A DNA stretch of 64,000 nucleotides from Iphione sp. A-MEVVRFRX5 (GCA_976226885.1 OZ320319.1:88536001-88600000), one strand, 5' to 3'. Positions 1 to 5,313 are shown, counted from the stretch's first letter. Notes: generated from the sequence alone by a model not told the origin. Numbers and translations: made by a program.

Positions 1-2
1 AG

Positions 3-719
3 GGGAGTGAAGACGATGACAATGCTGGAGAGGCCATGGACGAGGATGATGATAATCGTGATGAGGTGGAGGAGGAGGCCGTGGACAATGAGGACGCTAA
101 TTTCAGCTGGTCAAAAGTGGTGGAAGAAGGTAATACGGAATGGATAACTGCAGCAAAGAGATCGACGCCGAAAATTGCCCCTAAGCACAAACAGTATGAA
201 CCACCGATGAATGAAGTAGGGAATGAGACAGTACTAGAAAACAATGCAGGAATTGCATTTAGTGAAGCGGACTCTCCCTTTTCTAACTATTACCCAACAA
301 AAGTGAAACTACACGAAAAGGAGTTTGCGAGCGTGGAGCAAGGGTATCAGTGGGCAAAAGCCCATTATGCTAACGACCAATCTGCAAAAAAGCAAATAAT
401 GGATGCTAAGAAAGGATCGGCGATCAAAAGGATTGGGCAAAAAACAAGAACATCGAAGAAGTGGGAGGAGGACAAGCTAGGGGTAGTACAGACGCTGCTA
501 CGCTCTAAGTTCAGCTTGTCAGAGGAGTTGAAAAACAAATTACTACTCACACACCCGTTCAACTTGATCGCGGCAGGACCAGATCTATTTTGGGGATCAG
601 GCGCGAACATACGATCTAAATCACTGGCACGTGGTTCATTCCCAGGTGAGAACATGCTTGGCAGGTTACTCATGTCAGTGCGCGAGGAACTGAGGGAAGA
701 AGACGAGGATACTTACTAA
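3..719 (+). CDS. NADAR (YbiA/DUF1768-like) domain protein, 5'-partial; probable C-terminus of the LINE ORF1
   Basis: Frame is open from the window edge (GSEDDDNAGEA precedes the ATG at 36). An acidic linker is followed by NADAR motifs at about 252-700: SPFSNYYP, SVEQGYQWAKA, IKRIGQK, W, LRSKF..EELKNKLLLT, GPDLFWGSG, GENMLGRLLMSVREEL. Confidence 0.88.
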   Translation, partial: GSEDDDNAGEAMDEDDDNRDEVEEEAVDNEDANFSWSKVVEEGNTEWITAAKRSTPKIAPKHKQYEPPMNEVGNETVLENNAGIAFSEADSPFSNYYPTKVKLHEKEFASVEQGYQWAKAHYANDQSAKKQIMDAKKGSAIKRIGQKTRTSKKWEEDKLGVVQTLLRSKFSLSEELKNKLLLTHPFNLIAAGPDLFWGSGANIRSKSLARGSFPGENMLGRLLMSVREELREEDEDTY

Positions 720-1169
720 TGTATGTGGCAACAAAGGAGTATTTCTGAGAACTATTGAGCACGAAGTTTGAGTCACATTGATGCTGAATTTCAAGCGGGT
801 AGCTTGATATGACAGCATGCAAGGGCACGTCTACTAACTACCAGGCCAACGGGAATATGGAGAGGGCGCCGGTCATTGTTGCATACATGCGGCGGGGCGG
901 ACTGGCAACTACAACGTGTCAAGGCGAAGGGAGTATACGGACATCACCCCCATAACTCGAGGAAACACATACGTGGATGGTGAACTGTTGCCTATATCGA
1001 GGATATATTGGCAAATATTGGTGTTACAAAGGGAGCATATATGCTCTATGACTTTGCTAAGGATTGCTGGACTATAGGACTGTGTGCTGAACTGCAGAGC
1101 AAGCGAGAGACGAGGCAGATAAGTGAACCGTTGCTAATCTTAGCATATGCCTATATGCCTATTTTTGTT

Positions 1170-1826
1170 ATGCCTGCACACATTTACTATTTTTCTGATG
1201 GGAGGGCAGGTTTGGATAATTGGGAAGTAGTGATAGACGAAAAATCAATACATGTCATCCCTCTAAGGAACCAAAACATACAGTCCATGACAGACAGTAT
1301 TTTATCCCATGTATTCCCCTATAAGCCGTCCATGATACTAGTAGAATGTGGTATTGAGGATCTGGTAACGCATCGTTGTAAATACGAGGATAGGCCGCAA
1401 TATCAGTATATTTGTTTAACAGATGGAGGGTTTGCTGACATTAGTATACAGTTGCGAACAGAGTATGAGGTGTCTAAGCAGCGGCTACAAGGAAAATATC
1501 CGGATGTATATGTGGGGTATGTACCGATCTGGGGAGTGGATCTTGTACGATTGAACCTAGCACGAGGATATACATTACTCGATACACCCGCACCAAAGCA
1601 GCAACTCCTGGATGAGCTGATACCAGAAATCATGCGTATATTAGTGCAGATGAACAAAGACTCTCATGTTCCCACCGTATGGACGATGTATCTAATACAT
1701 AGGATGAATCATGGCAAGTGGGTAACTAGATATGAGAAGCTGTACGATGGTAGGAGCTTAAGCAAACACTTTAATCAAGACTATAAGTCAAAAATTCGAT
1801 CCTTTGTCCAAAAAATTATAATTTAA
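1170..1826 (+). CDS. SGNH/GDSL-hydrolase-like (esterase-type) LINE accessory protein, probably catalytically inactive
   Basis: ORF track 1008-1826 starts at TTG; in-frame ATGs occur at 1041 and 1170. Block I-like IYYFSDGRAGL, block III-like SMILVECGIEDL, VPIWGVDLVRLN, and block V-like LYDGRSL. Esterase domains are known in CR1-group ORF1. The start codon is uncertain. Confidence 0.65.
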   Translation: MPAHIYYFSDGRAGLDNWEVVIDEKSIHVIPLRNQNIQSMTDSILSHVFPYKPSMILVECGIEDLVTHRCKYEDRPQYQYICLTDGGFADISIQLRTEYEVSKQRLQGKYPDVYVGYVPIWGVDLVRLNLARGYTLLDTPAPKQQLLDELIPEIMRILVQMNKDSHVPTVWTMYLIHRMNHGKWVTRYEKLYDGRSLSKHFNQDYKSKIRSFVQKIII

Positions 1827-2074: not shown

Positions 2075-4942
2075 ATGGGGATGTTCATAATGATGATGAA
2101 TGTGCGCAGCTTATTAGCTAAAATAGTTGAATTAACAGACTATATAACAAGACTACAACCTTCAATGATACTGATCTCGGAAACGTGGTTAAATGATGAA
2201 ATTGTGGATTCTTTAGTAAGTATTAATGGCTATGTAATGATTAGACGTGACAGAAAGCTGGAAAGTAAAAGTATGGGGGGAGGCTTGATAATATATATTA
2301 GGGAGGGCATAGTTCATGAAGAGATTGCAGTTAATGAGCTTCTTACGGATTGTCCCAACATTGAGATGATAGGAGTAAAAATAAGGATGGATGGTAATCA
2401 GGAGATGTACATTTATAGTGTATATAGACCACCGTTCGCTGATGTACGAAAATTGCCAATATTGTTTGACAATATCGTCCGAGAAACAAAAGGGAAGAAC
2501 ATTATAATAGCAGGAGACATGAATGTAGATCAGGGAAGGCTGGACCTAAGGAGTAATCAGCAAATATTTAATCAAGTAGCGGAACAGGGTCTATATCAAC
2601 TAATAACTACCCCGACTAGGGAGACTGAACGGACAAGCACAGTAATTGATTTGGTTTTTACAACGACCCCAGAAAAAATTCGAACAGAAATAGATAAGAC
2701 AACTTTTAGTGATCATTATACAGTATACATTCACGTACAAGGAAAGGTGGTTCAGAAAAATATTAGGAAGAAATTGTACAGAACAATGAAACATTATAGT
2801 CGTACAAAACTAGCAGATAGACTGAATGCTCGTGACTGGGGGGAGATATACTCACAATGTGATTTAGAGTACAAATGGAGCTATTTTAATGAAAGGATTC
2901 TTCAAGAAGTGAATAGTATCTGCCCAATGAGAGAAACAAAAAACACAACTACAAGACATCAGTGGTTCGACAAGGAGTGTAAGGACTCGGTATTAGCTAG
3001 GGATAAGTGCTATAGTAAAGCCAGGCGTGACGGCAGTGCCAGTAGTTGGTGGGATGCAAAACGACAGTTTAGGAGAACAAGAAGATTAATAAAAATGAAA
3101 AAGAGGGCATACATAAATAAGGAGGTTGAAAATAACAAATCAAATGGAAAGAAATTTTGGAAGATTATGAAGAAGGAGTTGATAGGGGATAATGATGACA
3201 TCAAGATAGAACTAAAAGATAATAATGGGGTTGAGGTAGATAGGTCAGAAGTACCAGATTTTATTAATGATTTCTTTATAAATGTGGGAAGGAGAATATC
3301 AGAACAACTAGGGGAACCAATTAAAAGGAACAGAAAACCCATAAAACCAGCATTTACGTTTGATCTACTAACCATGAAGGAGTATTTAAAGCATGTTAAG
3401 GACTTACCTCTAAACAAACCCTCGGGTTGGCATAGAATAAGTATGATAGTATGCAAAGACATACTATATATAATGAGGCATGAGGTGTTAGTCCTACTGA
3501 ACCAATCACTAGTGAGTAAAGTTGTACCAGCGGACTGGAAAAGATCGATTGTAACCCCAATATTTAAAGGAGGAAATAGATTTGAAGTATCAAATTATAG
3601 ACCTGTGAGTATCTTAAATTTGTTTTCCAAATTATTAGAGAGGGTGGTCTATGAGCAGGTAATGAGACATCTTGACCGTAACAAATTAATTTCAACAAGA
3701 CAACATGGTTTCAGACCGAATCACAGTACGGGGACAGCTACAGGGATTCTGGCAGACGATATATACAAGGGACTAAATGAAAATGAATTAGTGGGGGCAA
3801 CCTATATCGACTGTAAAAAAGCATTCGACTCCGTTAATCATGCAATAGTTTTAGATAAGCTGGAAGCGATAGGATTGCAAAGTGAAATACTGTGGTTTAA
3901 AAATTATTTGAATGGTAGAAAACAATTGGTTAAAGCAAATGGTTTAGAATCGAAAGAACAGTTGGTAACTTGCGGAGTCCCTCAGGGGTCCATTCTTGGA
4001 CCCCTATTGTTTAGTATTTTTATTAACGATCTAGTGAATACAGTAAAGATAGGAAAAATACTTTTATACGCAGATGATACAGTGATATACGCTAATGGTA
4101 GAAAGATGGATGACGTAGCGCAGAAATTACAGGCAGACCTAAATAGGGTGGCTGATTGGTATGCAGAAAACAAGTTGCTGGTTAATATGAGTAAGACACA
4201 GTTTGTAGTATATGGGAATAAAATGAATCAGGAGAAACACAAAAACATTAGTGTAGAAATGTATAATGAGGAAGTAAAGAGATGTAGGGAGTATAAGTAC
4301 CTGGGGGTATGGTTGGATGAAACCATGAGTATGAACAAGTTTTATGACTCTATTTTGGCCAAACTAAGATCAAAGAGTAATATGTTGAACAGGTTGAGAG
4401 GGACAATAAGCAAGAATGTAATGGTTAGACTAATCAAAACCTATGTACAACCGGTAGCAGAATATGGGTGTTTTCTGCTAAAAACTCATGGAGGTAATCA
4501 GATAGATAAGCTAGATACGGTACTACGAAGAATTTATCGAAGAGCTTTAGGATATTCACACATTGACAGAATTAGCAATATCGACTTGATGACAACGATG
4601 AGACTGTTGCCTTTAGCATACAGGGCTGACACTCAAAGGGTTTTGATATATAAAAGAATAGGAGAGATACACATGATGGAATGCAATAATGAGCAGGTGA
4701 AAGATGAACCAAAGAGTAGTAATAGGATTAGGTATCGAACAAGAAGAAGTCTCCTCGCAATTTCTGAACCAGTAAAGATAAACTACGAAGTATTTCGAAA
4801 CTCTATACAATATGGTGGTGAAAAGCTCTGGGATTGGCTGCCATTTGATGTAAAAAGGGAAACAGAGATGGGGAAATTTAAGAAGAAAATAAAGCTGCTA
4901 ATGAAGGAGAAGTACCACTCCGAAAATTTTCTAGTTCCTTAA
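2075..4942 (+). CDS. LINE ORF2: apurinic-like endonuclease + reverse transcriptase, 955 aa, uninterrupted
   Basis: APE motifs NVRSL, ISETWL, GGGLIIYIR, VYRPP, IAGDMN, IDLVF, SDH. RT motifs NYRPVSIL, QHGFRPNHST, DCKKAFDSV, GVPQGSILGPLLF, LYADD, YKYLGVWLD. Start context is accATGG. Confidence 0.97.
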   Translation: MGMFIMMMNVRSLLAKIVELTDYITRLQPSMILISETWLNDEIVDSLVSINGYVMIRRDRKLESKSMGGGLIIYIREGIVHEEIAVNELLTDCPNIEMIGVKIRMDGNQEMYIYSVYRPPFADVRKLPILFDNIVRETKGKNIIIAGDMNVDQGRLDLRSNQQIFNQVAEQGLYQLITTPTRETERTSTVIDLVFTTTPEKIRTEIDKTTFSDHYTVYIHVQGKVVQKNIRKKLYRTMKHYSRTKLADRLNARDWGEIYSQCDLEYKWSYFNERILQEVNSICPMRETKNTTTRHQWFDKECKDSVLARDKCYSKARRDGSASSWWDAKRQFRRTRRLIKMKKRAYINKEVENNKSNGKKFWKIMKKELIGDNDDIKIELKDNNGVEVDRSEVPDFINDFFINVGRRISEQLGEPIKRNRKPIKPAFTFDLLTMKEYLKHVKDLPLNKPSGWHRISMIVCKDILYIMRHEVLVLLNQSLVSKVVPADWKRSIVTPIFKGGNRFEVSNYRPVSILNLFSKLLERVVYEQVMRHLDRNKLISTRQHGFRPNHSTGTATGILADDIYKGLNENELVGATYIDCKKAFDSVNHAIVLDKLEAIGLQSEILWFKNYLNGRKQLVKANGLESKEQLVTCGVPQGSILGPLLFSIFINDLVNTVKIGKILLYADDTVIYANGRKMDDVAQKLQADLNRVADWYAENKLLVNMSKTQFVVYGNKMNQEKHKNISVEMYNEEVKRCREYKYLGVWLDETMSMNKFYDSILAKLRSKSNMLNRLRGTISKNVMVRLIKTYVQPVAEYGCFLLKTHGGNQIDKLDTVLRRIYRRALGYSHIDRISNIDLMTTMRLLPLAYRADTQRVLIYKRIGEIHMMECNNEQVKDEPKSSNRIRYRTRRSLLAISEPVKINYEVFRNSIQYGGEKLWDWLPFDVKRETEMGKFKKKIKLLMKEKYHSENFLVP

Positions 4943-5285
4943 ATGTAACCTTTTGAAGGACTCATGGAAATGTTGACGGATAAATGTAGGCATACAAGAT
5001 GTTTTATGAAGTCCATAAGAAATAAAGGTGCAGAGAGTGGATCAAGATTGGAAGCTATCATCCTGTGGTAACTCTACTATTAGATAAAGAACCGTACCCT
5101 CCAGCGATCACCACATATTAAAAATGGCCATTGTATGTATTTTTGTGCCTATCATGTAATTCAGTGACTAATGTCATACAAAAGAAAGGATTGGTCTATC
5201 ATCACATTAACTCATACATCATTATGTGTTAAGATAAACTTGATTCTGGACCTTATGTACACTGTGTGTATAATATCATCCCAGA

Positions 5286-5313
5286 AATAAAATTTTTCAA
5301 AAAAAAAAAAAAA
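5286..5313 (+). terminator. Polyadenylation signal and A15 tail marking the LINE 3' end
   Basis: AATAAA at 5286-5291, followed by ttttttc-like spacer and 15 A at 5299-5313, about 350 nt after the ORF2 stop. Confidence 0.8.

Follow-up and report, generated by a model that had tools for sequence, protein, structure and literature searches.

LINE ORF1 proteins bind the RNA that encoded them. They are usually seen as RNA chaperones with few accessory domains, such as a zinc knuckle, a PHD domain or an esterase. An SGNH esterase in ORF1 of CR1/L2-type LINEs was reportedly described by Kapitonov and Jurka in 2003, and Schneider et al. are said to have determined the structure of one ORF1p of the SGNH-esterase type, that of zebrafish ZfL2-1, in 2013. 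The ORF1 proteins of several LINE families of Crassostrea gigas, labelled Tx1 in Repbase, appear to hold a NADAR domain of the YbiA family (PMC12477816). This is mentioned in one sentence, and the authors guess that the domain takes part in the processing of RNA intermediates. The same paper places a NADAR domain at the N-terminus of Pol in Gypsy LTR retrotransposons of Ectocarpus. Characterised NADAR domains, eukaryotic and YbiA-type ones among them, free guanine in both DNA and RNA, as well as cytidine, of ADP-ribose (PMC11543638, PMC11833690, PMC12945103). [quoted passage not shown] Orphan NADARs of T4-like phages neutralise DarTG1 (PMC11257639; PMC11543638), and they are a model of a mobile element that carries its own eraser as a counter-defence. 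Reviews of the family list molluscs among the animals with the domain and do not mention transposons. In the literature that was searched, PMC12477816 was the sole paper linking NADAR to LINEs, and no functional study was found. The occurrence of NADAR in a LINE ORF1 is therefore not new in itself, since the oyster elements are already on record. An earlier note on the DNA analysed here had stated that no functional description of such a system was known; this stands, and the mention of the oyster ORF1 proteins has to be set beside it. What we did not find described is the full anatomy of such an element (an L1-like ORF1 with NADAR, a separate SGNH ORF, an ORF2 of CR1/jockey type and conserved termini), the depth and constraint of its lineage, and a residue-level picture of its NADAR domain.

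The window analysed here is a stretch of 64,000 nucleotides from Iphione sp. A-MEVVRFRX5 (GCA_976226885.1, OZ320319.1:88536001-88600000), and a LINE on its plus strand crosses its left edge. Frame 3 is open over window positions 3-716 and closes with a TAA stop at 717-719. Reading-frame translation, an AlphaFold2 (AF2) model and fold matches identify window 1..719 as the 3' part of ORF1, encoding residues 305-542 plus the stop, that is, the C-terminal 238 residues of a 542-aa protein. The full ORF1 was recovered from the locus with 1,500 extra bases upstream of the window (L001), where it occupies L001:591-2219 and begins with its own ATG at L001:591, 910 bases to the left of window base 1. 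The intronless ORF with a NADAR domain that the earlier note had placed at 3-719 is thus real as an open frame with a PF08719 match; its start lies outside the window, and the leftward extension that the note had proposed yielded the complete 542-aa frame.

The ORF1 protein is arranged as a disordered N-terminus, a coiled coil, an RRM, an acidic and poorly conserved linker, and the NADAR domain at residues 393-535. The AF2 model of full ORF1, for which 17 paralogues were aligned, has a mean pLDDT of only 55.5 and is of low quality overall. It contains one long helix of 95 residues (96-190), with a block pLDDT of 81-90 over residues 101-180, and a fairly confident beta-alpha-beta-beta-alpha-beta RRM unit at residues 194-273. 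The top Foldseek matches of the model are the human LINE-1 ORF1p trimer and RRM (2ykp, 2ldy, 2w7a), with a Foldseek probability of 1.0 but E values of 2.6e-3 to 9e-3, 24-26% identity and low TM. Pfam Transposase_22 had no match in ORF1, and an L1-type C-terminal domain (CTD) was not recognisable either. The model and its fold matches point to an L1-ORF1p-like coiled coil and RRM to which NADAR has been added through the acidic linker.

The earlier note had placed the ORF with NADAR at the head of the element. The domain does not adjoin ORF2 directly, and a separate ORF of 218-261 aa, here called ORFx, intervenes on the plus strand at window 1041..1826 (open from 1008). Comparison with relatives gives a conserved core of 218 aa that starts near window 1170. 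The window copy has an in-frame upstream ATG that adds 43 residues absent from the relatives. ORFx had no Pfam match, and a PDB sequence-profile search returned chance-level matches only, so that the fold search alone was informative for this protein. Its AF2 model (pLDDT 75.7) aligns in VIA-align with E. coli TesA at Z 13.9 and an rmsd of 3.0 A over 163 residues, with many GDSL esterases at Z 12-13.8 and with PAF-acetylhydrolase at Z 11.9, and the nearest Atlas clusters are GDSL lipases. The conserved motifs of ORFx are FSDGRG, ECGIYD and HRxNHGKW, none of which is a canonical GDS, GxND or DxxH block. One serine and two histidines (Ser52, His220 and His224) are conserved and are candidate active-site residues on the basis of sequence. 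ORFx is thus predicted to have the SGNH-hydrolase fold without the canonical GDS motif.

ORF2 follows on the plus strand at window 2075..4942 and encodes 955 aa. Pfam locates an APE endonuclease at about 2099-2716 (Exo_endo_phos, 5.9e-09; Exo_endo_phos_2, 1.8e-13) and a reverse transcriptase (RT) at about 3587-4312 (RVT_1, 5.9e-39). Among named relatives the best, at 32-35% identity, come from a bird (Mycteria americana) and from a coral, the coral protein being called 'mobile element jockey', and gene models with PHD domains are also among them. In the PDB, human L1 ORF2p gave no match even at E<=10, and R2 proteins were reached at 2.4e-11. Because the named relatives are bird and 'jockey' proteins and human L1 ORF2p is without a match, ORF2 is classed as CR1/jockey type and not L1 type, a judgement from named database matches rather than from an RT phylogeny. 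This agrees with the CR1-group assignment made earlier. Elsewhere in the window, a fragment of another LINE RT lies on the minus strand at 25621-26964 and is 29% identical to ORF2 residues 380-820 (E 3e-53). A run of N, either a gap or a masked stretch, occupies window 12467-12632.

Both ends of the element can be placed by comparison among copies. In the alignment upstream of ORF1, similarity starts abruptly at TCATGGCGGAGTAG, which in the window copy is at L001:373 and gives a 5' UTR of about 220 bases. The conserved 5' terminus ATGGCGGAGTAG, at L001:373-384 (window -1127 to -1116), is also present in 16 related copies. It forms a three-codon upstream frame, Met-Ala-Glu-stop, and its variants (GCA for GCG, TGA for TAG) preserve both the frame and the stop. 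This short frame could be an upstream ORF or part of an internal promoter. At the other end, the 3' UTR (window 4943..5298, plus strand) contains a terminal module that is conserved in 22 copies, and the element closes with an A15 tail at window 5299..5313, as related copies also end in A runs. The 3' terminal module (window 5239-5313) consists of an outer 5-bp stem, an inner hairpin, a tail containing AATAAA, and the A run. The outer stem reads CCTGG...CCAGG in relatives and TCTGG...CCAGA in the window copy, where both sides have changed. The inner hairpin is TACAC...GTGTA, with TACAT...ATGTA in five copies. Of the 11 pairs in the consensus fold of the module, one shows compensatory changes, which occur in 5 sequences. 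The last 60 bases or so before the A run are conserved in the 22 copies although synonymous sites are saturated. The A run is 13-19 long in 23 of the 25 copies listed, and this near-uniform length suggests that it may be templated.

With its ends at TCATGGCGGAGTAG and A15, the whole element measures 6,441 bp (L001:373-6813, or window -1127 to 5313) and all three ORFs are open. A whole element was put together only at places in the genome where two of the fetched loci overlapped. This gave ten full-length copies, the window copy among them, that share the TCATGGCGGAGTAG start and the 3' module with its A run; the nine others are 6.15-6.47 kb long, and the three ORFs are all open in six of the ten, again including the window copy. 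The LINE is therefore as intact as the earlier note had claimed: full-length, with three open ORFs and shared termini. The target-site duplication that the note had expected to match the flank after 5313 did not appear, and no direct repeat of at least 7 bases flanks the element. Among the ten full-length copies a duplication was seen in only one, of 9 bases, and none was consistent.

The association of NADAR with the LINE is a property of many copies. Probing the whole genome at the protein level with the NADAR segment yielded 4,032 first-look candidates, and the 150 that were scored all had E<=3.7e-22, with identities from 100% down to 32%. The scored candidates lie mostly within frames of 500-600 aa that contain no stop. 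An ORF1 relative was present at every one of the 29 other NADAR loci fetched, near whole length in most and at about 50% identity. The loci also keep the same order: 28 continue into ORFx and 23 as far as the start of ORF2, and for five of the six without an ORF2 start the fetched DNA stops just after ORFx. Among RT matches from a DNA search, 16 of 28 have a NADAR match 3.0-3.4 kb upstream on the same strand. On these counts, other copies keep NADAR together with this kind of ORF2, the linkage on which the earlier note had made its proposal depend. At the DNA level the window element is a singleton, and the next best copy is 67-70% identical.

The arrangement extends beyond this genome. A word-index protein search with full ORF1 gave no match at E<=1e-5, probably because words from the coiled coil and the acidic linker crowded out the others, and an exhaustive profile search took its place in the search for ORF1 relatives. 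Outside this genome, the profile search returned 16,423 proteins at E<=1e-3, of which 67 had E<=1e-30, and many of these are proteins of 400-900 aa that match both the RRM and the NADAR parts. One outside NADAR-ORF1 protein is only 30% identical to the window ORF1 across RRM and NADAR. In the ENA assemblies ERZ25767047 and ERZ26222911, an APE-RT gene of about 960 aa follows the NADAR-ORF1 gene on the same strand at all five loci looked up, and at one of the five a 208-aa gene lies between the two. A host-gene last exon and chance adjacency are ruled out by the copy comparison, the complete ORF1 frame and the recurring three-ORF order. NADAR is part of the LINE and not a host exon. In ERZ25767047 (L063:7001-11800), two NADAR-ORF1 genes, both of 664 aa, stand in tandem upstream of one APE-RT gene; a duplication of the 5' part or a nesting of copies may account for them.

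Selection on ORF1 was estimated from 17 intact copies of this genome. Synonymous sites are saturated across them, with median pS values of 0.82-0.87. The NADAR segment has a pN of 0.10, against a median pS of 0.86, and, with synonymous sites saturated, a pN/pS of 0.12, the lowest in ORF1; the coil has 0.23, the RRM 0.30, the N-terminus 0.35 and the linker 0.45. The closest pair of copies, with dS 0.37 the sole pair close enough for a proper estimate, gave an omega of 0.086 overall and 0.04 for NADAR. The comparison across copies that the earlier note had suggested thus indicates strong purifying selection, and from this constraint the NADAR domain is judged to be needed throughout the diversification of the lineage. 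The copies in this and other assemblies also indicate that NADAR was already joined to ORF1 in the ancestor of a large LINE lineage whose members have since diverged deeply, and that purifying selection maintains the fusion. Taken jointly with the domain layout of ORF1 and the place of NADAR within the LINE, we regard this as nearly certain.

The NADAR domain lies at window 267..695 on the plus strand (ORF1 residues 393-535), as delimited by PF08719, by mapping onto 8bau and 2b3w and by the paralogue alignment. The window ORF matches the Pfam NADAR family with E 3.4e-28 and 99.4 bits, above the curated cut-off of 35.1, over model positions 9-163 of 163, which bears out the family assignment made from sequence motifs. 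With phmmer it reaches E. coli YbiA (2b3w) at E 4e-08 and the Phytophthora nicotianae NADAR (8bau) at E 1.2e-07. The AF2 model of full ORF1, with its 17-sequence alignment, has a pLDDT of only 50-67 over the NADAR part. The catalytic residues have been defined as E43, K50 and the family-defining E125 in the Phytophthora protein, and guanine de-ADP-ribosylation by E. coli C7 NADAR depends on the equivalents E88, K95 and D171 (PMC11543638). Mutation of the residue equivalent to E125/D171 abolishes efficient activity in E. coli C7 NADAR (PMC11543638). Through alignments to 8bau and 2b3w, E43, K50 and E125 map to ORF1 residues 416, 423 and 494, and residue 494 also corresponds to the Glu of LVE in YbiA. 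The window copy has Glu416 and Lys423, and its residue 494 is Ala (NLIAAGPD). Every motif quoted in the earlier note is present, and its 'full NADAR motif set' was an overstatement, given this Ala at the position of the YbiA-family catalytic Glu.

Most other members of the lineage have Glu at this position. In the 16 other intact paralogue ORF1s, residue 494 is Glu in 15 and Lys in one, residue 416 is Glu in 15, and residue 423 is Lys in all; across all 17 aligned copies, the window copy included, K423 is invariant and E416 is present in 16. A wider set of 175 NADAR domains was taken from the 150 best proteins outside this genome. There, Glu occupies position 416 in 154 domains and position 494 in 152, and position 423 is Lys in 127 and Arg in 28. 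The E-K/R-E set is complete in 134 of the 175, and about a quarter are without it. The YbiA-family Glu of the last strand is thus, by alignment, a feature that the lineage has and the window copy is without. The ligand-contact residues W458, D498 and W501 are also retained. The NADAR of the window copy differs from its 16 relatives at 10 of 76 sites that are invariant among them, and all ten changes are conservative. This pattern is that of a domain that is not decaying but constrained and probably folded. As an enzyme, the NADAR of the window copy is probably weak or inactive, because Ala at the third catalytic position would impair hydrolase activity.

The described systems each share a part of this organization. 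The oyster LINEs are alike in having NADAR in the ORF1 of an invertebrate LINE. They are labelled Tx1, which belongs to the L1 group, whereas no similarity to human L1 ORF2p could be detected in the present ORF2; this comparison was made by description and not by sequence. PMC12477816 gives no anatomy, selection or residue analysis for the oyster elements, and all three are given here. The Ectocarpus Gypsy elements are likewise retroelements with a captured YbiA-family NADAR. They differ in being LTR elements, in carrying the domain on Pol and not on the RNA-binding protein, and in its bacterial-looking origin, and the Ectocarpus and LINE NADARs are independent acquisitions. The CR1/L2 esterase LINEs resemble the present element in combining a CR1-like ORF2 with an SGNH-fold accessory, and the fold matches of ORFx include PAF-acetylhydrolase. 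In contrast to those LINEs, the SGNH protein here is a separate ORF with FSDGRG in place of GDS, and ORF1 is L1-like with NADAR.

The DarT1-NADAR systems and the orphan NADARs of phages resemble the LINE domain in their first two catalytic residues and, to judge by the sequence matches, in their hydrolase fold, and the phage proteins are the closest functional precedent (PMC11257639). They belong to the BC4488 (Asp) or phage (His) subtypes, whereas the LINE domain is of the YbiA (Glu) type and resides in a eukaryotic host. The bacterial NADARs also have a DarT partner, and the neighbours of NADAR here are LINE ORFs. A search of the whole genome for a writer enzyme with the Pfam families DarT (PF14487) and Enterotoxin_a gave no match; the control genomes were silent too, which makes this weak evidence. 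Among the closest relatives of the LINE domain are host-like proteins with 3 to 7 tandem NADAR domains (for example XP_048255702.1 and XP_046361666.2 of Haliotis rufescens). Of these two, XP_048255702.1 has three NADAR domains and a close NADAR sequence (profile E 9.3e-45). Unlike the LINE ORF1, the mollusc tandem-NADAR proteins show neither coiled coil nor RRM, and no RT lies beside them. The LINE domain may have come from such proteins, or they may be a domesticated offshoot of it.

The reading that we prefer is that the NADAR domain keeps the RNA, the cDNA or the target DNA of the element free of base-linked ADP-ribose, and we give it, by analogy with characterised NADARs, a tentative probability of about 0.45. 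Because NADAR is fused to ORF1p, which binds its encoding RNA, it would be present on the retrotransposition particle: ORF1p would coat the RNA of its own element in cis, and an N-glycosidic ADP-ribose hydrolase would thereby ride on the particle. Members with the Glu/Lys/Glu set, which are the majority, would strip ADP-ribose from guanine or cytosine, whether in the LINE RNA, in the newly made cDNA or in the target DNA. Undoing base ADP-ribosylation in this way would relieve a block of reverse transcription, second-strand synthesis or integration. The presence of Glu494 in 15 of the 16 paralogue ORF1s and of the E-K/R-E set in 134 of the 175 domains elsewhere speaks in favour of this mechanism. 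Against it, in the window copy, stands the Ala at one of the three catalytic positions, with which the domain would probably be weak or inactive in that role. The blank genome search for a writer enzyme also counts against the mechanism, though weakly, and so does the low pLDDT of the modelled NADAR part. PARP activity at integration sites would be a poor fit, since NADARs are inactive on phosphate-end ADP-ribosylation. A counter-defence by means of a self-carried eraser of base ADP-ribosylation is plausible. The stronger version, in which the LINE lineage would survive by virtue of its own NADAR eraser on the RNA-coating protein, as phage orphan NADARs do against DarTG1, seems to us quite improbable.

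The missing third residue also bears on a different explanation, in which NADAR is not catalytic. The domain might instead recognise ADP-ribose or a related nucleotide and so guide the ORF1p-RNA particle or hold it in place, or it might stand in for the missing L1-type CTD as a nucleic-acid-binding or packing surface. The window copy has lost that residue, yet its changes at invariant sites (10 of 76) are all conservative. Similarly, about a quarter of the domains elsewhere are without the E-K/R-E set, and ORF1 has the coiled coil and RRM of L1 ORF1p and no recognisable CTD. However, all three catalytic positions are kept in 15 of the 16 paralogue ORF1s and in 134 of the 175 domains elsewhere, and such retention in most members is hard to explain if the chemistry is irrelevant. 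The ligand-contact residues W458, D498 and W501 have been retained as well. We consider a purely non-catalytic role unlikely.

NADAR may also be an enzyme with another substrate. It might act on an NAD-derived group on the LINE RNA, such as a non-canonical 5' end or a by-product of splicing or ligation, or it might be a small-molecule N-glycosidase, as YbiA is on intermediates of the riboflavin pathway. The domain belongs to a family of the YbiA type with the last-strand Glu in most members, and the physiological targets of NADARs unlinked to DarT are unknown (PMC11543638). The processing of RNA intermediates, moreover, is what has been proposed for the algal and oyster elements (PMC12477816). 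On the other hand, nothing here points to a specific alternative, metabolic clean-up has no obvious benefit to a transposon, and the attachment of NADAR to a protein that binds RNA speaks for nucleic acid as the substrate. Another substrate thus has a small chance of being the correct explanation. The view that NADAR is the last exon of a host gene adjoining the LINE, or a functionless passenger acquired once, can draw on the exact element being single-copy at the DNA level (next best 67-70% identical), but it has next to no probability, as the frame of ORF1 is complete and its N-terminal half resembles L1 ORF1p, 28 of 29 loci here repeat the three-ORF order and other assemblies repeat NADAR-ORF1 followed by APE-RT, NADAR is the most constrained segment of ORF1, and conserved element termini lie outside the ORF on both sides.

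Removal of base-linked ADP-ribose by an enzyme on the retrotransposition particle is thus the reading that we carry forward. An ADP-ribose-hydrolase fold has been kept on ORF1p through synonymous saturation, and ADP-ribose chemistry would therefore somehow matter when these LINEs retrotranspose in their animal hosts. What NADARs do physiologically in animals is regarded as an open question (PMC11125620), which NADAR-LINEs would make directly accessible to genetics. Should the target be a mark written by the host, these elements would be the first case of base ADP-ribosylation as a means of transposon control in animals.
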